Below are positions 9,006 through 62,478 of a stretch of DNA of 64,000 nt, piece by piece. Origin of the DNA: Schizochytrium sp. TIO01 (Eukaryota > Protista > Bigyra: Labyrinthulomycetes); the NCBI GenBank assembly GCA_004764695.1, contig SMSO01000006.1, positions 883,859 to 947,858 on the forward strand, read 5' to 3'. Under the pieces are notes generated by a model, which ran no database searches, was not told the origin of the DNA, and was given only the letters and a program-made list of their open reading frames with translations. The stretch's first letter is position 1. Every line of letters starts with the position of its first letter. The position numbers and the translations under genes are program-made.

Positions 9006-9078
9006 AGTCGCTGAGGAGGGTCGAACTCCTGACTTCTGGATTCGAAGTCCAGCACGCTAACCACTGCGTCACAGCGAC
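9006..9078 (-). tRNA. tRNA-Arg (anticodon TCG), copy 1
   Basis: Acceptor stem GTCGCTG/CAGCGAC, D-arm ACGC/GCGT, anticodon arm CTGGA-CTTCGAA-TCCAG, T-arm AGGAG-TTCGACC-CTCCT; 73 nt, no intron. Confidence 0.96.
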
Positions 9079-9713: not shown

Positions 9714-9786
9714 AGTCGCTGAGGAGGGTCGAACTCCTGACTTCTGGATTCGAAGTCCAGCACGCTAACCACTGCGTCACAGCGAC
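9714..9786 (-). tRNA. tRNA-Arg (anticodon TCG), copy 2
   Basis: Identical 73-nt body to copy 1, 708 nt away, same strand. Confidence 0.96.
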
Positions 9787-26419: not shown

Positions 26420-28516
26420 TCCTTGCCTTGCAGGTCAGCAAGAAGGCGGGAACTACGACTTGCGCATCGCTTCCTCGCCCCTTCAGCAGAGTTTCAAGTC
26501 TATGCGCCAGAATGAGACAGATGCCAAGCTCACCTTTAGAGTAACCACTCGCCGTATACATCCCTAATGTGGTTGTCAATGCCAATAGAGGATGCATTTA
26601 AGGAGAGTTTTGCTTCGATGTAATCCCGCATCTGGGTTCAATCGGGCCACAAAAGGGAACCGAATACATTCCCCAAGAAACCCGCAAACCCCATCAAACG
26701 CTTCAAATCAACGTACTCCTCATCAAGCATCATAAACCCCAAACAAGCATTACTCTGCCTTTAATCTGCCTATTCATGCGCTTCCTTCCCCAGGTTCCGC
26801 AGTTCTTCATTTACATCACATTACTCCTCCTGCCACAGCCGCTACCGCTTCGCCTAACTGAGTCTGCAAGCCCCGCTTTTACTGCGCCTTCTACCCCAAT
26901 CCCTAGTCCCATCCACTTTTGTCTCCAGCCGCCTAGCCTCTAGCTACGGTGTATAGGGACCCATTCGGTGGGTACCTTTTACAGAGGAAAAAGCAGAATA
27001 GCGCGAAATAGGGCAAAATATGGCGAAATAAGGCGAAGTAAGCGAGGCCGTCGCTGGCAAAGAGGCCTCCCTCGTGCTCTCTGTGGTTTCTCCTGTCCGT
27101 TTGGGAGGCATGCTTAGGCTCTGCGGCGCGGCGGCTGTCCCGGCGGGCGGTTTTGCGCGAGACCCCCACGCATAAAAGCAGGTTGCGCCCCTTGTGGCAA
27201 TGCCGGGAGGTTACTCCTGTTACGCCCAATAGGGCGGGTGTGTTTGGGGAAGCGGTTCGAGTCCCAGGGCGTGCCGTGGGAAAGGCGTCGAGACTGCGCG
27301 CACTCTGAGGCAGTTCCCGACAGGGGCACTTCATGTAGGTGGGGTGTCCTGGTCGATAATGAGCAGCGGAACGCGTGAGGCTGGAAACAGAGCAACGAAA
27401 AGCAGGCCTGAGCTGTCAGCAAGTGTAACACGCGGTTGAGTCCGGAACCGGGTCAACATGCTCTGGAATTCATCTGCAACCCCATTTCTAAATCCTTCTT
27501 TTTATTTTCTTTTTTTTTTTTCCCTTTCTATTTCCTTCTTTCGTTTCCTGCTTCTGTGGTTCCTTGCTCTATGCGGAAACCGCATAGCGCTTTCGGATGG
27601 AGAGCCACGGCTTCGTTTTGGTTTTTCTTTGGCTTGCCGACGAAGTTGGCACATCATATGAGGGCATCGGGGTGCTGGCGATGCGAAGGAATTCGAGGCT
27701 CGGGTAGGTGTAGTATCTAAGTGTTTGTTTATCTCTTTTGCAGATGGAAATGGCGTTTGATTGCTTGAGGGTATTGAAAATGAGGGTGTATAGAACATGG
27801 GGAGAAGAAGTGCTGTAGATAGGTGGTGTGCTTTATTTATTTTTCTTTGTAGATTAGCGGAAGGGATGAGAGCAGATGCCTCTCTGTGAACTGATGCCCC
27901 ATATTGGTAGGTATTCACTCAAGGAAAGACACTTCCGATTGAAAAGCTATGTATTATCAACCAGCACAAACCCTTCGGGGGCTCCTGTCTCACCGAATGC
28001 GTTGGTAGTGGGCGTCCTGGAAGCACTTAGATCACGTTGAACAAGATGAATTGATCATAACTCTCCCTTTGTGCACATGAATTTATTTTAGGTTTTACGC
28101 GCAATTCCATCTTGAGAGGCAAGTTTTTAAAAACTGAAAATAAGACATGTATCATGAGGGAGCGAAGTTTTGGAGAAGTGAAGTATCGGCTTTTTCGAAT
28201 GTAAAATTCCCATAGGAAAATCCTGCTTTCCTATGGATAGATGAATTTTTGGCATGTATAATTTGAGGATGATGCCCAAGCCACACGACTTCTGAGAAGT
28301 ATTTGACTTCCAGGCGCTGTTCAACAAAATGCAAGTGTTCGGCAAGTTCCTAATTCTAAACGAAACCTTCAATTTAGTTCTTTGCTTTATAAAGAAGGTT
28401 TTATAAAAGCTTTTCAATATTCTGGTCGTACTGTGGACATCGCATATTTGGAATGAACAGAATTTGGGCATCACGGAAGGCTAATCACTGACCAGCTGGA
28501 GAATGTCTGGGTGGAA

Positions 28517-45840: not shown

Positions 45841-48526
45841 TTATTCCAATCTAAATCCGGTGCCGACGATATCTGGTGTTAGTAGGGGTAAGAGTTGTGC
45901 TCCTAGAATGCTGGGAAGGCTTTTGTCTTGAATATTTTTATGCCAGTACTCACGCAGACGCTCCGCGCGTAGCAACCGCCATGCCTCGCGAACTTGCTCA
46001 AATGAATCAGGATAAAATGGGTCTTTCCCAAGTTTTCTGGAGCAGGTTGCTACATGCCTGTGGCACGCGTCACTATCCTCTGAGCAATAACCCAAACACC
46101 AAGCGCAAAAGTTTTGCCCGCATGCCGTATTGCCACATTTCACAGCACAGCACCCATCAAAGGTATCGAAGCAGGCATTGCAGCTCGGACAATATGCATT
46201 CAATATTTTCTCCTGTATGTACTGCAAATGTCGCTGTGCGTCAAGCGCCAGGCCATCCAGCTGTAGAATTTCTGCCATGCGTCTCTGGATTACTTGCTCA
46301 GCATGAATGGCAGCTCCTTCTTCTGCCTTCATCTTCGCAATGAGCAAAAGATGGTTCAAAGCCTTAGGCGCAAGATGAGTAATTGCTTGACCTGTGATTC
46401 TTCCATCACATCCAAGCGTCATGCAGACCATTGTTCCATCAGCATCCACAGTTATAGAGGGGTGCGGTTGTGCAGCAGCCTCTACTGAGCGAACAATACA
46501 ATCTCGGCAGATGAAGTGCCCTTTCTCGCAGCTTGTGCCTTCACAGAGAGGGATTTCCTCGATACACACAAGACACTTCTGAACAGGAACCTCAGGAACT
46601 CCAAATGCTTCGTGCTGGAGTGCTTCTCGAGCGCTCATACGTTGCTTCGGGTTTGGGGCTTTAAGTTTCTTGATAAGGTCCTGCATTGCACTATCTGGCT
46701 GAGAATACAGTTCTTCTAGGACTACACCCACAGAGTACATATCCATCGGTGTTTCGAACCTATCTACTGGTCTACTTTGTAATTCAGGAGCAGCATATCG
46801 AGGTGTTGCGTAAAGAGATGTAAAAGTTGCGGTGCAATCTGCAGTTTTTATACCGTCGAAATCGCCCAGCAAGGGAGTTCCGTTGCTCGAGAGGAATATA
46901 TTTTCTGGCTTGATGTCACAGTGCACGATGTCATGCGAATGTAAGTCCGCCACGCCAACAAGTAAGCCAATGGCAAGTCGGTCACGAGCTGCTTTGTCTT
47001 CGTGAGGATATTTCTCAATCCATTCGGCTAGGCTGCCCTGCTCATAGAAAGGCATAACAATGCAGCCACGCGGCACTCCGTGCGTGGTGTCTACGAAAGC
47101 ACCAATAATTCGGATCACATGGTGAGAAAATACTTTGCCTAGATTTGCTACATTCGTGTAGAACGTCTTGGCGTGGCTTGGGTGTCCCAATTGGAACTGT
47201 TTCAGAACTAGAGTCTTGCCATTACTATCTAAAACCTTTTGCACCGTCTTGCCACCTCTCGATGCGAGGAGGTCACCAATAGGTTGGAAATCCGTAATCT
47301 GCACGTTTACCAGCCAGAGATCCGAGCTAGCCACCTCAAACACACCCTCCGCGCTTACATGTATTCTTCCTAGCCAGGCTTGATCTTTCAGCAGCTCTGG
47401 ATAATACTCTTGCGCATGCTGCAGAGTTTCAGCAAGCTTGTGACGAAACGCTTTACTTAGTTCTATAGGGGTCCCTTGGGAGAGGATCTCCTCTTGTTCT
47501 GCAACCTCATCTCTGTAAAATGCTCTCTTCTTTTCTGTACTTGCAGCCTGAAGGCTATCCTTAGCTCTTTTTAAGCCTTCCATCGCACGTCGTGACCTGT
47601 CTAGCTTTTCATAGATCAGTTCAAGGTTCGTAACGTCTGGCTGGTTTGAGCCTAAAAGCACGTACTCGTGTATCTCCGAAAGTTCTTCTGGTGAAAGCCT
47701 TCTAGTAAGTTTGTTGGACTTGCTACTTTCGGTAAAGTTTTCTACACGCTGGAGTGTTTCGCTGATATCGTAAAGTATTTTAGACACGGGAACACTAAAG
47801 GTGTCTGATTTCAACACTTCGAGCTCCTCTTGAAGAGAATTTTGCAGCTCAGAGAGCTCAAATTCCAGCTTTGCAGCCTTTCCAGGTCTTCTGAGGGCAA
47901 TCCAGAATACATGGCCAAGATTCAACTCAGTTGCTCGCGAGATAACGCTCTCAACAGCTCGTTCGCTTCGTTCTCCAATGTTGTTTAGATGTCCTTCTTG
48001 GTTCATTGTGTACTCTTCAATGCATTTCTCAGCCTCATGGACAAGTTCTTGGCTATGCTCTAAGTCGTCTGCACATGACCCTTCTGTGACTGATGCATCA
48101 CTTGTGTCTAGATCTTCTATCAAGCTTACAAGCCTTTCTTTGAATTTGCAAACGAAATCTTCATCACTTTCGCAATGCTTTGCATGAAGCCACGGATACA
48201 CGTCTTGCAAGAGTGATCGTAGACGCTCCCTTTCGGCATCTCGCTTCTGAACGAGATCATGCAAGCCACCGGGCGGGCTTGCACGAATCTGGACTTGTAA
48301 GGCATCTAAGCGTTCTTTGGAAATTTGGATGTCACCAGACACCTGTCGCAACTTCACTTGGCCAAAGTAGCCCTGGATGACCGGTTCTGTGAAATCCTTG
48401 AGCAAACCGATAGCGGTCTGCAGGAAACTGCCTCTGGTCTCGCCGAGACCCCCGCGCAAGTCGAAGACCTCCTTCGCAAGTTGGACCACATCAGCAAAAC
48501 TCACGCTGGCGGTACCTGGCCTGTCC
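45841..48526 (-). CDS. Terminal exon of the LRR gene: helical/coiled-coil region, Ser/Thr kinase-like domain, C3HC4 RING and RING2/IBR-like domain
   Basis: LVLKQF, HCDIKPENI, GDFDG, YAAPEL, DMYSVG; CLVC..C.KGHFICRDC..CMTLGC; CPSC..FDGCCAVKC..CGQNFCAWC..CHRH. The first ~70 codons of the 964-aa ORF are intron (GCT repeats, pyrimidine tract, TTCAG acceptor at 48527). Confidence 0.9.
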
Positions 48527-51500
48527 CTGAAGCAGGCAGACAAACAAACGAACAGGAATGGGTGAGTGTCGGAATTTGAGTTTGAAAGAGAAAGAGAGGC
48601 CGATTGAGCGAAGACGCCAGCAACGGCAGCAGCAACAGCAGCAATAGCAACAACCAAAACAACAACAGCAAGTAATGAGCAAGTTAGGATCCCATTTTTC
48701 AACGCCACAACTTTTGAAGCAAGCCACGAATTCATAATAGAATAACTAAAATAAATCGGTCAATCACCCGACCAAAGAACGCATGAACTTACGAAGATCC
48801 ATCAGCAGCGCAAGGCTCCACAACGCGCCCAGCTCCACCAACGTTATCATGCTCGCTCTCGGGCTCTGCAGAAGGCTCGCTCGCAGGGTCTCCCGAGAAA
48901 CAGGAATCGGCTGAGGAGTCAATGTCCTCTTCGGGAGCACACACCTTTGCAAACAGTTCTTTGGGGCTTAAACCACGATAAACACCTTCCAAAATCAGAA
49001 CTGTCTCAGAGGAATAGAGAAAACCCAAGAGCACTGGTTAGTTGAAATTGAAGATCACAGAAGGTCTCGCAACTCCATGGATATAGTTTCGAGCAACCAA
49101 CGAAGGAAAGGCTCTGTGCAAACTAAGAGCAGTAGCAGAGGCGACTCAACTTACTAAATTTTAACAGAATCGCGTGCTTTGTGAAGAGACTTCGCGATGG
49201 CCTTGGCGCCCTCAGTGCCAATGTTGGTGTTGGAAATACTGTGTGTGCTCAAGAAAAGAGACAATACATTTTCATCAGTCAGCGAGTTAGTGAGTGAGTG
49301 CGTCAGTGAGTTAGTGAGTGAGTGCGTCAGTGAATTCCATCCACGGAAGAAGTCTTCTTGCTTTGCTTTTCTCTTAGCGTTGTGGGTTTTGAGTTGTTTC
49401 TCCACTTTTACAACAGTGCAATGCTGAGCTCATTCCAGTTCTTCTCCTCTATTATTCAATCACCTGATTGTTCACTATTTGAAACTGAGTTCTGCAAATT
49501 AAGAATCAGCTGCAGAGAATGAAACTGCAGAGAATGAAAAGAAGAAAACAGAGATGTGATCTTTCTGTGGATCAAACGTACTACAATGATTGAAGGTTCA
49601 CGCATTTCTCCAGTGCCTTGGCGACGGAGATGGCGCCCTCAGTGCCAATGTTGTTGTTGTCAAGACTGTGTGTGCTCAAGAAAAGAGACAATACATTTTC
49701 ATTTCATCAGTCAGTGAGTGAGTGCGTCAGTGAGTTAGTGAGTGAATGCGTCAGTGAATTCCATCCACGGAAGAAGTCTTCTTGCTTTGCTTTTCTCTTA
49801 GCGTTGTGGGTTTTGAGTTGTTTCTCCACTTTTACAACAGTGCAATGGTGTGCTCATTCCAGTTCTTCTCCTCTATTATTCAATCACCTGATTGTTCACT
49901 ATTTGAAACTGAGTTCTGCAAATTAAGAATCAGCTGCAGAGAATGAAACTGCAGAGAATGAAAAGAAGAAAACAGAGATGTGATCTTTCTGTGGATCAAA
50001 CGTACGACAATGATTGAAGGTTCACGCATTTCTCCAGTGCCTTCGCGACGGAGATGGCGCCCTCAGTGCCAATGTTGTTGTTTCAAGACTGTGTGTGCTC
50101 AAGAAAAGAGACAATACATTTTCATTTTCATCAGTCAGTGAGTGAGTGCGTCAGTGAGTTAGTGAGTGAATGCGTCAGTGAATTCCATCCACGGAAGAAG
50201 TCTTCTTGCTTTGCTTTTCTCTTAGCGTTGTGGGTTTTGAGTTGTTTCTCCACTTTTACAACAGTGCAATGGTGTGCTCATTCCAGTTCTTCTCCTCTAT
50301 TATTCAATCACCTGATTGTTCACTATTTGAAACTGAGTTCTGCAAATTAAGAATCAGCTGCAGAGAATGAAACTGCAGAGAATGAAAAGAAGAAAACAGA
50401 GATGTGATCTTTCTGTGGATCAAACGTACTATAATGATTGAAGGTTCACGCATTTCTCCAGTGCCTTGGCGAAAGCTTCGGAACAATCAATTTTGTTGTT
50501 GGAAAGACTGTGTGTGCTCAAGAAAAGAGACAATACATTTTCATTTTCATCAGTCAGTGAGTGAGTGCGTCAGTGAGTTAGTGAGTGAATGCGTCAGTGA
50601 ATTCCATCCACGGAAGAAGTCTTCTTGCTTTGCTTTTCTCTTAGCGTTGTGGGTTTTGAGTTGTTTCTCCACTTTTACAACAGTGCAATGGTGTGCTCAT
50701 TCCAGTTCTTCTCCTCTATTATTCAATCACCTGATTGTTCACTATTTGAAACTGAGTTCTGCAAATTAAGAATCAGCTGCAGAGAATGAAACTGCAGAGA
50801 ATGAAAAGAAGAAAACAGAGATGTGATCTTTCTGTGGATCAAACGTACTATAATGTTTGAAGGTTCACGCATTTCTCCAGTGCCTTCGCGACGGAGATGG
50901 CGCCCTCAGTGCCAATGTTGTTGTTTTCAAGACTGTGTGTGCTCAAGAAAAGAGACAATACATTTTCATCAGTCAGTGAGTGAGTGCGTCAGTGAGTTAG
51001 TGAGTGAGTGCGTCAGTGAATTCCATCCACGGAAGAAGTCTTCTTGCTTTGCTTTTCTCTTAGCGTTGTGGGTTTTGAGTTGTTTCTCCACTTTTACAAC
51101 AGTGCAATGGTGTGCTCATTCCAGTTCTTCTCCTCTATTATTCAATCACCTGATTGTTCACTATTTGAAACTGAGTTCTGCAAATTAAGAATCAGCTGCA
51201 GAGAATGAAACTGCAGAGAATGAAAAGAAGAAAACAGAGATGTGATCTTTCTGTGGATCAAACGTACGACAATGATTGAAGGTTCACGCATTTCTCCAGT
51301 GCCTTCGCGACGGAGATGGCGCCCTCAGTGCCAATGTTGTTGTTGGAAAGACTGTGTGTGCTCAAGAAAAGAGACAATACATTTTCATCAGTCAGTGAGT
51401 GAGTGCGTCAGTGAGTTAGTGAGTGAGTGCGTCAGTGAATTCCATCCACGGAAGAAGTCTTCTTGCTTTGCTTTTCTCTTAGCGTTGTGGGTTTTGAGTT

Positions 51501-54500
51501 GTTTCTCCACTTTTACAACAGTGCAATGGTGTGCTCATTCCAGTTCTTCTCCTCTATTATTCAATCACCTGATTGTTCACTATTTGAAACTGAGTTCTGC
51601 AAATTAAGAATCAGCTGCAGAGAATGAAACTGCAGAGAATGAAAAGAAGAAAACAGAGATGTGATCTTTCTGTGGATCAAACGTACGACAATGATTGAAG
51701 GTTCACGCATTTCTCCAGTGCCTTCGCGACGGAGATGGCGCCCTCAGTGCCAATGTTGTTGTTGGAAAGACTGTGTGTGCTCAAGAAAAGAGACAATACA
51801 TTTTCATTTTCATCAGTCAGTGAGTGAGTGCGTCAGTGAGTTAGTGAGTGAATGCGTCAGTGAATTCCATCCACGGAAGAAGTCTTCTTGCTTTGCTTTT
51901 CTCTTAGCGTTGTGGGTTTTGAGTTGTTTCTCCACTTTTACAACAGTGCAATGGTGTGCTCATTCCAGTTCTTCTCCTCTATTATTCAATCACCTGATTG
52001 TTCACTATTTGAAACTGAGTTCTGCAAATTAAGAATCAGCTGCAGAGAATGAAACTGCAGAGAATGAAAAGAAGAAAACAGAGATGTGATCTTTCTGTGG
52101 ATCAAACGTACTATAATGTTTGAAGGTTCACGCATTTCTCCAGTGCCTTCGCGACGGAGATGGCGCCCTCAGTGCCAATGTTGTTGTTGGAAAGACTGTG
52201 TGTGCTCAAGAAAAGAGACAATACATTTTCATTTTCATCAGTCAGTGAGTGAGTGCGTCAGTGAGTTAGTGAGTGAATGCGTCAGTGAATTCCATCCACG
52301 GAAGAAGTCTTCTTGCTTTGCTTTTCTCTTAGCGTTGTGGGTTTTGAGTTGTTTCTCCACTTTTACAACAGTGCAATGGTGTGCTCATTCCAGTTCTTCT
52401 CCTCTATTATTCAATCACCTGATTGTTCACTATTTGAAACTGAGTTCTGCAAATTAAGAATCAGCTGCAGAGAATGAAACTGCAGAGAATGAAAAGAAGA
52501 AAACAGAGATGTGATCTTTCTGTGGATCAAACGTACTACAATGATTGAAGGTTCACGCATTTCTCCAGTGCCTTGGCGACGGAGATGGCGCCCTCAGTGC
52601 CAATGTTGTTGTAGGAAAGACTGTGTGTGCTCAAGAAAAGAGACAATACATTTTCATTCAGTCAGTGAGTTAGTGAGTGAGTGCGTCAGTGAGTTAGTGA
52701 GTGAATGCGTCAGTGAATTCCATCCACGGAAGAAGTCTTCTTGCTTTGCTTTTCTCTTAGCGTTGTGGGTTTTGAGTTGTTTCTCCACTTTTACAACAGT
52801 GCAATGGTGTGCTCATTCCAGTTCTTCTCCTCTATTATTCAATCACCTGATTGTTCACTATTTGAAACTGAGTTCTGCAAATTAAGAATCAGCTGCAGAG
52901 AATGAAACTGCAGAGAATGAAAAGAAGAAAACAGAGATGTGATCTTTCTGTGGATCAAACGTACTATAATGTTTGAAGGTTCACGCATTTCTCCAGTGCC
53001 TTCGCGATGGCCTTGGCGCCCTCAGTGCCAATGTTGGTGTTGGAAATACTGTGTGTGCTCAAGAAAAGAGACAATACATTTTCATCAGTCAGCGAGTTAG
53101 TGAGTGAGTGCGTCAGTGAGTTAGTGAGTGAGTGCGTCAGTGAATTCCATCCACGGAAGAAGTCTTCTTGCTTTGCTTTTCTCTTAGCGTTGTGGGTTTT
53201 GAGTTGTTTCTCCACTTTTACAACAGTGCAATGGTGTGCTCATTCCAGTTCTTCTCCTCTATTATTCAATCACCTGATTGTTCACTATTTGAAACTGAGT
53301 TCTGCAAATTAAGAATCAGCTGCAGAGAATGAAACTGCAGAGAATGAAAAGAAGAAAACAGAGATGTGATCTTTCTGTGGATCAAACGTACGACAATGAT
53401 TGAAGGTTCACGCATTTCTCCAGTGCCTTGGCGACGGAGATGGCGCCCTCAGTGCCAATGTTGTTGTAGGAAAGACTGTGTGTGCTCAAGAAAAGAGACA
53501 ATACATTTTCATCAGTCAGTGAGTTAGTGAGTGAGTGCGTCAGTGAGTTAGTGAGTGAATGCGTCAGTGAATTCCATCCACGGAAGAAGTCTTCTTGCTT
53601 TGCTTTTCTCTTAGCGTTGTGGGTTTTGAGTTGTTTCTCCACTTTTACAACAGTGCAATGGTGTGCTCATTCCAGTTCTTCTCCTCTATTATTCAATCAC
53701 CTGATTGTTCACTATTTGAAACTGAGTTCTGCAAATTAAGAATCAGCTGCAGAGAATGAAACTGCAGAGAATGAAAAGAAGAAAACAGAGATGTGATCTT
53801 TCTGTGGATCAAACGTACGACAATGATTGAAGGTTCACGCATTTCTCCAGTGCCTTCGCGACGGAGATGGCGCCCTCAGTGCCAATGTTGTTGTTGGAAA
53901 GACTGTGTGTGCTCAAGAAAAGAGACAATACATTTTCATCAGTCAGTGAGTGAGTGCGTCAGTGAGTTAGTGAGTGAGTGCGTCAGTGAATTCCATCCAC
54001 GGAAGAAGTCTTCTTGCTTTGCTTTTCTCTTAGCGTTGTGGGTTTTGAGTTGTTTCTCCACTTTTACAACAGTGCAATGGTGTGCTCATTCCAGTTCTTC
54101 TCCTCTATTATTCAATCACCTGATTGTTCACTATTTGAAACTGAGTTCTGCAAATTAAGAATCAGCTGCAGAGAATGAAACTGCAGAGAATGAAAAGAAG
54201 AAAACAGAGATGTGATCTTTCTGTGGATCAAACGTACTCTAATGATTGAAGGTTCACGCATTTCTCCAGTGCCTTCGCGACGGAGATGGCGCCCTCAGTG
54301 CCAATGTTGTTGTTGAAAAGACTATTTGTGTTTTGTATGTTGTAGAAAATGAGTAAGTACGCCATCTTCAAGTCACTATTACCATTCCAAAGCTGTTGCT
54401 AAAACCTTGCTTTACATTTTGAATCACATTGAGAACGCCGTGTCGCGATCTGTCGATTCATTCCGCCATGGCCGACTTACTATATCGTCGTGGTATCTTT

Positions 54501-54533
54501 GCTGATGTCTCCAATGCTATTTGCCTTGGTCAT
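45841..54533 (-). CDS. LRR-array / coiled-coil / kinase / RING-RING2(IBR)-like protein, 16 exons, about 1330-1345 aa if two 1-nt frame defects are resolved
   Basis: Exon 1 is 54533-54481 (MTKANSIGDISKDTTTI). LRR exons: 54321-54238, 53902-53819, 53475-53392, 53048-52965, 52620-52537, 52195-52112, 51770-51687, 51351-51268, 50932-50849, 50507-50430 (78 nt), 50088-50006 (83 nt), 49665-49582, 49238-49155. Linker exon 49000 (or 48966)-48793. Terminal exon 48526-45841. All boundaries are GT..AG and phase 2 in the intended frame. Confidence 0.8.
49155..54321 (-). repeat. Tandem array of 12 intron+exon units (~419-428 nt) plus a bounding LRR exon
   Basis: Unit is GTACGTTTGATCC...CACACACAG intron (335-344 nt) plus an exon, usually 84 nt, encoding xLxxNNIGTEGAISVAKALEKCVNLQxL. 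Confidence 0.97.
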
Positions 54534-55075: not shown

Positions 55076-55125
55076 TTGGACGAAGTCCTTGGACGAAGTC
55101 CTTGGATGAAGTCTTTGGATAAAGT
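55076..55125. repeat. Short 13-mer tandem (TTGGACGAAGTCC) x3-4
   Basis: Direct degenerate repeats. Confidence 0.7.
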
Positions 55126-57302
55126 ATGGAAGGGAGGGATGTGATCTCATTATGATGCGCTAACTAATCAGTGTGATGGCAAAGGAAAGTCGAGTAGGGT
55201 GGACAATCTTCTGAAGTTTGGTGCAGGGTACTCTGGAAATATTCCTTATGAATTTTGAGGTAAAGCTGTGAAAACTTCAAAATCCCTTTTTATTCCTTTG
55301 CTTGATGCTTAAAGACCAACACAGATTCGCAGATGCTGCTATTTAATTTGTTTGGATTGCAGATAAGTTTGTGTATGTGTGTACAGACGCACAAAAGCTA
55401 TGAGTCTTACAATGGATGTTGTAGAATTTAGCAACTGTTCAACCTACTTGCCCTTCCGGTCGTATATTTCAACAGGCTCTACAGAAGACATTGAGCATGC
55501 TGGGGTTGCTAAAAGGACTTTGTTGTTGTACCACACGAAACGCCGTATTTTTATGCTAGAAAGTACTCTATATTGACACTAGTCCTGATAGGCTTACATA
55601 CTACGAATCAATACATGGAGTTAGCAAAACCCGATTACTATCTTCGGGGTCGACAGCGTTAGAAAAAGTAGATAAGCTGTTTCATCTTTCAAGTGCTCAA
55701 GTTGCATTGATAATTCTTATGTATCTTAAAATAAATGTTATACTTTGGGGGTTAAAATAAATAGGAAAGCTAAACTGGATAAACTGTTTACCTCAGAGTA
55801 TTGATTCGCTAGATTCGATTGCTTTTTATACTTTATAAAAAGTCGTTTTGATGCCTATGTTTTCTTCATCGGTATTTAGGGTCCTCGCGAACGTAAAAAA
55901 CGTGCGTCGTATCTGTTTTCTATGCACACTCCTTTTGGTTCTCTGTTTATGCTGCTTGTAGTCTGGAAGAAGAGTCAACTCAGCATCTTGCAAATTCTGT
56001 GTGACGCAGTAGTCCGCTCGGAATGTATTCCATTTGCCAGCAGATTGCTGACTTTTAATACCTCAGTCCACAAAGTCTTCGCAAGTATGTTGCGAGCCTT
56101 TAGACATTTGTCTTTATTTTGCTAACAAATCTGCTTTCAGCATACACTGATTGCTTTAAGTATTTTATAAACAAAGTTTTGTTAATAAATTTGGAGATGA
56201 GATAGCCTTCCTTTGTATTGTTTTCTAGTTGAACGGATTGGATTGCATAAAATCACTATATAAAATACTACAATTGTTCATATCAATTAACTTGACTTTC
56301 CAGCTGACTAAAGAAGTATCCAATTGTATTCGTTGCTTGAAATATGAATGGTGGCATTATAAACAGTGATTTTTTCTTGACCAGAAGGTATAGATCGAAT
56401 ACATCAATGTGAGTGGCCATTTACCTTTCTTGAACTCTTTGTTTCTAAAGCTCAATCTCAAACTCAACCTAAAGTAGCTCAGGTTGGCCATTATGCAAGG
56501 GTCTGGCGAACAATACTAATACTATTGCTCGCAACCACAACTTGTAATACCAACTGAATTTATTTAAACACAAAATGTCGTATAGCAAGCGTTCTATCAA
56601 TATTGTTTGTATGGTAAGCCTTCAAAGCATGTACAACAAATATAAACCCCACATAAAGCTGCAGCAGGTTCGCAGATAGCGCATAAATATTCCCGCAGAG
56701 CTAACGAGCTAGCTCTAGGGTGCAATATTGCAGACAAGACAACGCCGGCGCCAACGTTCTAACGGATGGAAGAAGATATGTTTCAATACAAGCAAACGCA
56801 TGCGACTGGGCAAGCTTAGTACTCCATGCGCTGTTTTTATCAAGCTAGAGTACTGGAACCAATGAATCGATACTCCTTTCGCAATACACAGCTCAAAGCA
56901 TCGACATCAGACACACAGCACAAAACATCGATATCAGGTAAAAGCTCAGCTGGTTTCGCGCTACGGCTTTTGCGTGAGTGTGTTGTGCCATCGCTAGCTG
57001 TGTCAGCTTGTGTCGCGTGGTGCCGTGCCAAGTTCACCTCACAGGCCGCCAGCAGCGTTGAATTGCCAAACACCAAATTGAGACACTTCGTTGACTTGTG
57101 GCGTGCTGCCACGCCCACTGTGAAACTTGTGGAAGTCTGTGTAATGGAATGCGTAGGAACAAGATAATACTGTATTGCTGTAGCAGTGAGCCACAGTGTA
57201 GACCCACGAAGCAGAGCGCACAATATGCCTGGCCACCCTGGAGGCTAAAAGCTGTTGTGAGTTGCTCTAGCCTGGCAGGCTGTGTCTTTCATCACTATTG
57301 AC

Positions 57303-57394
57303 CGCATCACATTGCATCACATTGCATCACATTGCATCACATTGCATCACATTGCATCACATTGCATCGCATCGCATCACATCACATCGCATCG
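57303..57394. repeat. (ATTGCATCAC)n decamer minisatellite decaying to (ATCGC/ATCAC)n
   Basis: Direct run. Confidence 0.9.
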
Positions 57395-59044
57395 CTATCT
57401 CGCTCTCGGTGCTTCCTCAGCGTCCGAGTCGTCAACTGACGCATTGAACTAATTTTTATTTTTATTAATTCTTATGATATATATATTCCAAATTAAAATT
57501 AACATAACGATAATAATGATTTATAAAACAAGATAGTTATTATAATTGTTATTGTTATAGTAATTGTTGTTTGGGGAAATAATAATAAACAAGCATGAGC
57601 CGATTCACATGCACTAACCTTTTGCTGGCCTTGGCGCAAAGCCTGCTTAGATGCGCGGAAGAACACGCATGTCAAGTTCCGCCAGACTAACTTGCCCTGG
57701 GCGTAGGTGACCTCAGCCGCCTCGACCAACATCGAAGCATCAGCAACCCCTCTGTGCCGCTCTGAGGGCAAAGATAAGACGAAAGCTTCCCTCAATCGCA
57801 TTCTCGTGTAGGTATCAATCGATCCGTAGAGCCCCTGAGATGATTATCGCTAGCCACAATCTCTTTCTTTGTGTGAAGGTCTACTTGCTCTGCGTGCTCC
57901 TCGCTGGCCATCGCCATGCGAGCCCGCCCGTCGCCGCCAATACCGTCTTCACAGTCGTCTTCGAGGCCACATCGAGAACCAGCAAAGGACTCCAAACGGA
58001 GATAGGCGCTCTTGAGAGTTTTGCCAGCATTGGGAATCCGCCGAGAGCCATGCAACGCACGCCTGGTTCTGACTTAGACCAGGGCGTCATTGTGAGTGCG
58101 AGAGCAATCAATCAATCAATCAATCCTCAGAGACAAGCGCTCAGCCACGAGGAGCGAACCTAAGAGCTGCATGTCTCTTGGAGGGCCCAGATCAACAAAC
58201 ACGACGACAACGGAGACTCTGAAGCACAGTGGCGATCGCTTAGAGGCGTCGCAGACTATCTCTCATCTCGCTCCTTGTGCCCAGTTCGTTGAGCCAATCG
58301 CAGCGCAGTGCCGACACGAGCAGAGAGCGGAGGAGGCACACTGCTCAGAGGTCCGCAGATCAACCTTTGGGCCCTGAGCCTGAAATGGAGCTCGTGCATC
58401 CCACGCAGCAGAGCGTTGCCGAAGGAGGACGTGTCCTCGTTCCTGCGACGTTTGCATTCATGGTGCTGCTCCGCTTTCGTACGATTAGAGCACGGCACAT
58501 CGATCGTGAGCATGGATGAGCTTGAAGCTCGCGATTGCGCACAGCAGCAGCAAATGCTCCTGCGATTGATTCATGGAAACGACGACAGCAGTTGAGCTCC
58601 CGATCCAGGACCTCAGCTCAAGCCGGAGGAGCGGAGCAGCTGGCGCTCTTCCCGTTCCTTGAGAAGCCAATCGCCGCCAGCGTCAGCGTGGGCTCGTTCG
58701 TGTGCTCTTCAAGTCGAGGAATGGTCGAGTTGGTTATGAAAGCAGTCGAAGAGGTGAGTGGAAAGAAGTCCGTCTTTCTGATCGACTGAGTTCGGGTTCG
58801 TCCACCACCACTACAAAACTAAACTGAGGTGCCTGCATCATCCGCTCTGACGCGGGCGCCGTCTCGTCTCGGAGGGAGCAGAGCAGGAGAACCAGCTTGA
58901 GGAGAATGAGGAGACGGAGAAGAAAGCTCTGGGCTGCGCTCCGTCGAAACGCCGCGCGAGGCCATTGAGCTATGGCAAGCGAGCAAAGGGCAAGATTCGA
59001 GGAGGGATTCATTCTCAGGCGAAAGCATTGATTGACTCGAATAG

Positions 59045-61515: not shown

Positions 61516-62478
61516 ATGAACTCGAGCTTTCACAGCAACCAGCAAGCTTCGTCTGATTTTGACGCAGATTTTGCCATGCCATCCATGTCTTCTTCAGCCT
61601 CATCCTCAATGTCACTGAACAGTTCCATGGTCTCAACAGGGGGCTCTTCTGATTCTCAAAGATCGCCTGTAGATAACAATGATGACAATCATCAAGATGG
61701 GTCATTTCATAGCTCAGGCGGTGAGCCGTCAGAAGATAACAAAACAAATGAAATTGCAAGTGATGCAGACAGTCGCACCTTGCAATATCAGCTTTCTCAC
61801 TCACACGACGAAGACCGAAACCAAGATATCGACATAGATCTTGATGATGCTGATGCACAGAGCGATGGTCCAGACGGCGATACTTCTCACGAAGCAGGAA
61901 GCTTGCAAAACCTTCCACAAACTAAAAGCCTTTTGTCGGCTTGTCTGGCAGGTCCTGAAGAAGTGCAGCGAACGTTGTCCTCCGAATTTGATTTGAACGA
62001 GGATGTTGTTTTTTATGTTTTAGACAAGGTGCTGAGCTGGCCAGAAGGTGACGCAAATGACGCAATTTTACGTGCTTTCCTTCGGGATCCCCGACTTGAC
62101 CTTAGTACAAATGATTGGTGGATACTTCGCAATGCAGCTCGTTTTGGCCGAGCTCATTTCATTCGGGATGCACTGCGTGCACTCGATTGTTCACCAACGG
62201 AGAAATGGGCTATTGTCACATCAAACATTCGAGGGTTATGTACGCTTTCGTGGGCTTGCATCAATAATATGAGTAACGTCATCGATGTACTTCTCGAAGA
62301 AGTAGCCTCCCAAACTCATCCTTCTCTAACGAACCAGGATCTCACGACAGCAATAGCATTTTCAAGAGAACTCGGAAATGCTGATGTCTATGAGCGCTTG
62401 GTCAAATTTACCGCACAGCGAAATTTACCACAACATACACCCTACGCCATTGATGAAAGATTCGCGCATATTGTGTGA
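61516..62478 (+). CDS. Ankyrin-repeat-like protein with acidic, Ser-rich N-terminus (320 aa)
   Basis: DPRLDLSTNDWWILRNAARFGRAHFI, TLSWACINNMSNVIDVLL and AIAFSRELGNADVYERL resemble degenerate ankyrin repeats. Confidence 0.7.
   Translation: MNSSFHSNQQASSDFDADFAMPSMSSSASSSMSLNSSMVSTGGSSDSQRSPVDNNDDNHQDGSFHSSGGEPSEDNKTNEIASDADSRTLQYQLSHSHDEDRNQDIDIDLDDADAQSDGPDGDTSHEAGSLQNLPQTKSLLSACLAGPEEVQRTLSSEFDLNEDVVFYVLDKVLSWPEGDANDAILRAFLRDPRLDLSTNDWWILRNAARFGRAHFIRDALRALDCSPTEKWAIVTSNIRGLCTLSWACINNMSNVIDVLLEEVASQTHPSLTNQDLTTAIAFSRELGNADVYERLVKFTAQRNLPQHTPYAIDERFAHIV

Follow-up and report, generated by a model that had tools for sequence, protein, structure and literature searches.

The window analysed here is a 64,000-nucleotide stretch of the genome of the labyrinthulomycete Schizochytrium sp. 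TIO01 (assembly GCA_004764695.1, contig SMSO01000006.1, positions 883,859 to 947,858 of the forward strand), and its minus strand carries a tandem array of leucine-rich repeat (LRR) exons between window positions 49155 and 54321. The array is likely the N-terminal sensor domain of one expressed and spliced LRR-kinase gene. Along it the whole unit of ~420 bp, exon and intron together, is uniform, with four codons as the exception, and the introns are not specially conserved. We regard concerted evolution of the whole unit, combined with diversifying selection on four surface positions, as the best explanation of this pattern, and consider it probably correct.

Tandem Repeats Finder reports a unit of 419 bp in 12.1 copies with 96% matches over 49190-54330. 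Extracted from the sequence, the minus-strand array consists of 13 exons and 12 introns, numbered here in the direction of that strand (Table 1). Eleven exons are 84 nt long, E10 has 78 nt and E11 has 83 nt, while the introns measure 335-344 nt and all read GTACGT...CACAG. At its 5' end each array exon carries the third base of one split codon and at its 3' end two bases of the next, making it symmetric. Every intron of the gene is in phase 2. The original prediction made from this DNA had described the array exons as symmetric and phase-2, and all 13 spliced strand motifs that it listed were reproduced. The intron cuts through the LRR beta-strand. Each exon product is one 28-residue repeat, LSNNNIGTEGAISVAKALEKCVNLQSL, plus the split codon. 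The 28-residue consensus fits the pattern LxxLxLxxNxIGxxGAxxLAxAL, and by this consensus the array repeats are ribonuclease-inhibitor-type (RI-like, LRR_6) LRRs. A single exon matches Pfam LRR_6 (PF13516) with E = 0.008 and 16.6 bits, under the 23.4-bit cut-off, and a profile of 12 exons matches LRRC34 (E = 0.002) and DRC5 (E = 0.009) in the PDB. The x positions of LxxLxLxxN make up the concave ligand-binding face of LRRs.

The original prediction described the 12 introns as near-identical and as more conserved than the exons. The near-identity was borne out: only 5 of 335 ungapped intron columns vary, two of them singletons in the last intron (49424 and 49427) and three lying in the acceptor-proximal microsatellite, which also holds the one indel (0-10 nt). 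The comparison with the exons holds on average, nucleotide diversity being 0.009 in the introns, 0.12 across all exons and 0.05 across ten standard exons. Columns are also variable more often in the nine standard exons than in the introns (9/84 vs 5/335, Fisher p = 3e-4). The comparison fails for the 66-nt exon scaffold, which is as invariant as the intron (1/66 vs 5/335, p = 1.0), and we therefore conclude that the entire 420-bp unit is homogenised. The diversity is instead found in the 11 bases of the four variable codons, where it reaches 0.247. A near-invariant scaffold, likewise part of the original prediction, is present in 10 of the 13 exons; E4 is chimeric, E10 has 78 nt and a replaced segment, E11 is one A short, and E13 is divergent. 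The alignment of all units with intron and exon diversity and codon-wise substitution statistics thus concentrates the variation at four predicted exposed codons, a form of binding-face diversification that the original prediction had anticipated.

Among the nine standard exons, amino-acid differences occur only at codon 2 (S/F/E/D), codon 3 (N/Y), codon 26 (S/T) and the split codon 28 (S/Y/D). Numbered on LxxLxLxxN, these codons are assigned from the consensus to LRR positions x7, x8, x3 and x5, respectively. By the Nei-Gojobori method, the proportion of non-synonymous differences (pN) at the four codons is 0.284 and that of synonymous differences (pS) 0.033, a pN/pS of ~8.6. The other 24 codons have a pN of 0 and a pS of 0.058, the latter stemming from two synonymous polymorphisms, GCG/GCC and TTG/TTA. 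The whole-exon pN/pS of 0.76 masks this contrast between the two sets of codons. There is accordingly an excess of non-synonymous change at positions predicted to lie on the concave face. The same sites stand out in related arrays of the genome, fetched upstream of 12 paralogous kinase exons: in a per-position entropy analysis of 65 repeats from five such arrays, codons 2, 3, 26 and 28, and no others, rise above 1.5 bits, at 2.6-3.2 bits. For the variable codons of the present array, the overlap with the hypervariable codons of its paralogues has p = 4.9e-5, or p = 0.006 when the chimeric E4 is included. Taken on the pattern of substitutions, selection would be the cause of the four-codon distribution.

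The history of the unit can be followed in its scaffold. The internal repeats carry the array-specific states AISV and EKCV, whereas the paralogue family and the terminal exon of this same array keep AKA[VI], and the family also has EGCK. The array-specific states place the homogenisation of the internal repeats, or their renewed expansion from a single founder, at a time long after the divergence from the paralogues. In E4, a standard 3' part follows 49 nt identical to the start of E13. All four pairings of a 5' block (codon 2 being S or E) with a 3' block (SL-tc or TL-ta, 3 bases apart) are present, and the microsatellite types of the introns recombine with the flanking exon ends. The chimeric exon, the four block combinations and the shuffled microsatellites together show that exchange points fall in exons and introns, roughly in proportion to length. 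We propose that the array grew by tandem duplication of the ~420-bp exon-plus-intron unit and that unequal crossing-over or gene conversion would then keep the unit uniform, intron and exon scaffold alike, in a process of concerted evolution. Diversifying selection would preserve or favour differences at the four predicted solvent-exposed beta-strand positions x3, x5, x7 and x8.

Further evidence comes from contigs of four public runs belonging to four studies, whose records only guess RNA, aligned to 48400-54399; these are assembled contigs, which drop rare isoforms. Among the reference intron copies, differences outside the microsatellite amount to ~0.1%. Between the reference and contigs of a second strain (X19, X13) they amount to ~1-2% in the unique introns beside the array and to 0.9-3.8% in array introns, and so the homogenisation is younger than the divergence of the strains. 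At the same hypervariable codons the second strain has other residues (e.g. LAG and ISH, with N or F at the split codon), from which it follows that the variable codons turn over between strains. It also has an E10-like exon, which places the origin of the array before the strain split. The 5' 35 nt of E10 in the reference (50473-50507; ..NNKIDCSEAF..) occur only once in the genome. Another strain expresses a related form, ISHNNIDCS, and E10 is therefore an old variant repeat that resisted homogenisation.

The same data bear on a neutral origin, in which a young amplification would have acquired its exon-end differences by local mutational bias or through conversion tracts from paralogues, with no selection acting here. 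Such an origin would account for units that are ~99% identical outside the four codons, and the paralogous arrays supply many donor variants. Several of the differences are also multi-nucleotide (TCC vs GAA/GAC), as templated patches would give. The changes nevertheless hit exactly four exposed codons and leave untouched the flanking scaffold, which lies 17-19% from the paralogues. At those codons, where the second strain shows further differences, pN is much greater than pS, whereas pN is 0 elsewhere. On this balance we consider a neutral origin unlikely, and prefer concerted evolution with diversifying selection.

The contigs also define the gene to which the array belongs. Their joints are canonical (GT..AG), showing that spliced transcripts are present in the runs. 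The segment 48527-48792 is skipped in all four runs and 49001-49154 in X17 and X1, with one X17 contig covering 48400-48525, 48792-49000 and 49155-49238, that is, the big downstream exon, an acidic link exon and E13. At the other end, contigs from X17 and X1 join the end of E1 at 54321 directly to 54481, in a first coding exon, E0. The ATG at 54533 has an in-frame stop upstream, and the 5' untranslated region is at least 255 nt long. Joins between exons within the array, for example E9 to E10, are seen as well. Given the joints from E0 to E1, within the array and from E13 through the link exon to the big exon, the array forms the 5' portion of a single gene whose 15 introns are all in phase 2. 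All observed exon-exon joints fit consecutive splicing once repeat ambiguity is allowed for. Apparent exon skips (e.g. 49238 to 50006 and 49665 to 54240) were set aside, being attributable to identical exon ends, the 49 nt shared by E4 and E13, and variant exons of the other strain. E13 was likewise rejected as the last coding exon: the TA/G at 49155/49154 makes a stop only if unspliced, and contigs splice E13 to 49000.

These joints are relevant to a second alternative, in which the locus would be a programmed diversity generator, its introns serving as recombination platforms or its exons as alternative cassettes that yield clonal receptor variants. This is the mechanism put forward in the original prediction, and it corresponds to the somatic-recombination hypothesis for Ectocarpus. 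Symmetric phase-2 exons do permit any in-frame combination, stretches of ~340 nt of identical intron are bound to promote unequal exchange, and the frame would be kept if the 83-nt E11 were skipped. Alternative splicing of LRR exons has been reported in brown-algal ROCO genes (PMC11378527). Against this, homogeneity extends beyond the introns, breakpoints lie inside exons as well, and all exon-exon joints seen are compatible with consecutive splicing. Neither an RNA family nor RNA structure was detected in the intron, which is absent from other loci. A functional RNA in the intron was considered and rejected, with no Rfam match at E <= 1 and a fold no stabler than shuffled sequences (z = +1.44). 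No recombinase or deaminase is linked to the locus, though none was searched for. The platform role that the original prediction gave to the introns is unsupported, given the equally invariant scaffold, the exonic breakpoints, the lack of an Rfam match and the lack of excess structure, and we judge a programmed generator to be very unlikely. We would give hardly any more weight, and if anything slightly less, to mitotic unequal exchange or regulated in-frame exon choice producing a shifting LRR-kinase sensor repertoire in clonal populations. A working diversifier of this sort, if it existed, would give a single-celled parallel to the somatic variation suggested for brown algae.

The assembly itself requires scrutiny. 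X17 and X1 contigs show no substitution relative to the reference, yet add 2 nt after 48980, which restore the frame of the link exon that is broken in the reference. All four runs add 3 nt after 48910, also in the link exon. These extra bases indicate that the reference carries local indel discrepancies, and the A missing from E11 may be of the same kind. Such discrepancies invite the reading that the length and order of the array are an assembly construct, or that the locus is a dead copy, a decaying pseudogene. In favour of it are the indels between assembly and contigs at 48910 and 48980, the one base that E11 lacks, and a related published thraustochytrid assembly that is Nanopore-based and has reduced BUSCO completeness (bioRxiv 10.1101/2023.06.15.545109). 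However, four runs from as many studies contain correctly spliced transcripts of the locus, and in their contigs the link exon is in frame. Distinct unit variants and the adjacencies E9-E10, E0-E1 and E13-link are seen in contigs, and ordered, codon-specific variants are not invented by assemblers. An artefact or a dead gene thus has only a slim chance of being the explanation.

Several observations weigh against concerted evolution with diversifying selection in an expressed gene. The assembled allele reads as broken, its frame being interrupted in E11 and again in the link exon, and the contigs mend only the second of these breaks. Contig depth fits the copy number only roughly, the shared exon core standing at ~8.7x single-copy depth in X17; the depth of the array intron in X1 is ~7-11x that of a single-copy intron. 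There are few independent events among the 13 units, and the site statistics therefore treat related copies as independent. The variation is modest (S/F/E/D, N/Y, S/T, S/Y/D) next to that of the paralogues, and short-tract mutation or templated conversion aimed at the four codons may have contributed.

Table 1. Features of the LRR-kinase gene, in window positions.
Feature	Positions	Strand	Description
E0, first coding exon	54481..54533	-	ATG 54533-54531, 17 codons plus 2 nt; degenerate N-terminal LRR cap
Intron 0	54322..54480	-	159 nt, GTAAGT...AG, phase 2; unrelated to array intron
E1, 84-nt LRR exon (LFN...QSL)	54238..54321	-	
E2, 84-nt LRR exon (LSN)	53819..53902	-	Identical to E7 and E8
E3, 84-nt LRR exon (LSY)	53392..53475	-	
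E4, 84-nt chimeric exon	52965..53048	-	5' 49 nt = E13, 3' part standard
E5, 84-nt LRR exon (LSY)	52537..52620	-	
E6, 84-nt LRR exon (LSN...QTL)	52112..52195	-	
E7, 84-nt LRR exon	51687..51770	-	
E8, 84-nt LRR exon	51268..51351	-	
E9, 84-nt LRR exon (LEN...QTL)	50849..50932	-	E9-E10 splice seen in X1
E10, 78-nt in-frame variant exon (LSNNKIDCSEAF...)	50430..50507	-	Middle segment replaced
E11, 83-nt exon	50006..50088	-	One A short in A-run (50081-50083); frameshift and in-frame stop as assembled
E12, 84-nt LRR exon (LDN)	49582..49665	-	
E13, divergent terminal LRR exon (ISNT...AKSLHKARDSVKI)	49155..49238	-	Conserved with terminal exons of paralogues
Span of 12 array introns	49239..54237	-	335-344 nt each
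Array introns 1-6	53903-54237, 53476-53818, 53049-53391, 52621-52964, 52196-52536, 51771-52111	-	
Array introns 7-12	51352-51686, 50933-51267, 50508-50848, 50089-50429, 49666-50005, 49239-49581	-	
Intron 13	49001..49154	-	154 nt, phase 2; joint 49000/49155 spliced in X17, X1
Acidic link exon	48793..49000	-	Conserved in paralogues
Intron 14	48527..48792	-	266 nt, phase 2; joint spliced in all four runs
Last exon	45841..48526	-	2686 nt including stop; region without Pfam match, kinase domain ~46702-47247, Cys-rich tail 45844-46668

Downstream of the array and on the same strand, a 964-residue open reading frame (ORF; 45841-48735) encodes a protein kinase domain (PF00069, E = 1.9e-29) and a Cys-rich tail. 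The kinase domain (46702-47247) has HCD in place of HRD in its catalytic loop, making it non-RD, and its DFG motif reads DFD. Non-RD kinases are over-represented among innate-immune receptor kinases. No Pfam family was found in the region between the link exon and the kinase. A Pfam search of the downstream exon detected neither a NACHT or NB-ARC NTPase nor a ROC-COR module after the LRRs, Pkinase being the sole match. The Cys-rich tail has zero Pfam matches at E <= 1. Its weak PDB matches are to RNF216 (E = 0.048) and, with a profile of four sequences, to the RING2 domains of parkin and Ariadne (E = 0.02-0.03), so that the tail is possibly RBR-like. A plant-type transmembrane LRR receptor kinase was considered and rejected: the hydrophobic stretch at 48527-48735 lies in intron 14, which is spliced out in all four runs. 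As this hydrophobic start of the ORF is intronic and the N-terminus encoded by E0 (MTKANSIG...) is non-hydrophobic by inspection of the sequence, the protein is predicted to be cytosolic. By analogy with receptors of similar build, we infer a role in ligand recognition that may be immune-like.

The kinase exon has at least 47 paralogues in the genome at 60-67% identity (from 328 first-look candidates). Many of them have LRR exons directly upstream on the same strand, 81-83% identical to those of this array, and conservation extends to the terminal exon (AKSLHKAxxSVxI) as well as the acidic link exon. The introns of the main family are 0.94-0.96 identical within arrays and 0.93-0.96 identical between contigs, whereas the exons are ~0.86 identical. 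The main-family arrays on contigs C18, C30, C8 and C6 thus share introns while differing in exons, and homogenisation in that subfamily therefore acts between chromosomes, which is not the case for the present array. Not every family member is homogenised, as judged from the old-looking array at C36:2583671-2591670, which belongs to the closest kinase exon (67%) and comprises 14 LRR exons with diverged scaffolds and introns of 199-1154 nt.

The array intron was not found elsewhere in the genome, where only GTGA-type microsatellite matches occur, and no alignment to the family intron is possible, the identity being 0.53 where shuffled sequence gives 0.51. An introner or other mobile intron was rejected, all 12 copies of the 335-nt intron being confined to this array. 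Exact copies of the array exons were not found elsewhere in the genome, nor was any LRR-like ORF found in the array introns. The locus lies mid-contig, at 0.93 Mb of 1.85 Mb, and no rRNA gene was found within the window. The gene belongs, as a diverged copy in the interior of a chromosome, to a family of at least 47 LRR-kinase genes. Outside this genome the kinase exon has only three matches, all of them Logan-assembly proteins with 51-59% identity.

The AT-rich region upstream of the gene contains a minisatellite with units of ~10 nt (GATGCAATGT-like) at 57290-57420 on the minus strand and a 13-nt tandem repeat at 55076-55125. Farther along the window, at 61516-62478 on the plus strand, a 320-residue ORF with an acidic, Ser-rich N-terminus has no Pfam family at E <= 0.01. 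A full-length signal recognition particle RNA gene (Rfam RF00017, 92.8 bits) occupies 27202-27486 on the plus strand, and two tRNA genes with an equal Rfam score of 67.7 bits lie 708 bp apart on the minus strand (9006-9078 and 9714-9786).

Systems of this kind are already known. The same combination of concerted evolution and diversifying selection has been documented for the 72-nt, phase-2 LRR exons of brown-algal ROCO genes (PMC3341825, PMC11378527). Like the present gene, the LRR-ROCO genes of Ectocarpus and kelps have one LRR per symmetric phase-2 exon, tandem arrays and concave-face diversification. They too encode cytosolic candidate immune receptors that combine LRRs with a signalling domain in a stramenopile host. 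They differ in exon length (72 nt for 24 residues, against 84 nt for an RI-type repeat of 28 residues here) and in having ROC-COR where the present protein has a kinase and a Cys-rich tail. Antisense or orphan intronic LRR exons were not seen at this locus, and the private array intron gives no sign of exchange with other loci, again unlike the brown-algal genes.

In fungal NLRs, the WD, ANK and TPR repeats undergo concerted evolution together with positive selection on a few positions (PMC4986451). The Podospora genes nwd, het-d and het-e resemble the present gene in their near-identical repeats, reshuffled and under selection at a few binding-surface positions (four in WD). Unlike it, they are NOD-based and carry non-LRR repeats that are not encoded one per exon and have no introns between them. 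In lamprey VLRs, interchangeable LRR modules also vary a concave binding surface, but VLRs are assembled somatically from flanking cassettes, whereas the germline gene described here is complete and simply spliced. Within the same genome, the main LRR-kinase family shares the architecture, the 84-nt phase-2 exons, the hypervariable codons and the terminal and link exons; the present copy is set apart by its mid-contig location, its private intron and its 60-67% kinase-exon identity. A literature search found no description of such receptors in thraustochytrids or labyrinthulomycetes. The one paper found on related repeats in such genomes describes them as non-coding LORE-TEARS spacers without similarity to known sequences (bioRxiv 10.1101/2023.06.15.545109). 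What is new is the 84-nt RI-type exon, the effector half with a kinase and a Cys-rich tail, and the lineage.

The locus provides an independent replicate of the family pattern, namely a diverged copy with a private intron and the same four-codon variability. Since the same four codons vary despite the private intron, the pattern is a property of the protein surface and not of a repeat family or of chromosome ends. A further correction concerns the introns, for which special constraint is a tempting but mistaken reading, and the spliced contigs are direct evidence for splicing of the LRR array to the kinase exon. Together with its at least 47 paralogues, the gene points to a large, fast-evolving repertoire of cytosolic LRR-kinases in a labyrinthulomycete. 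If these receptors are immune-like, they would offer a tractable unicellular system in which to study repeat homogenisation and diversifying selection.

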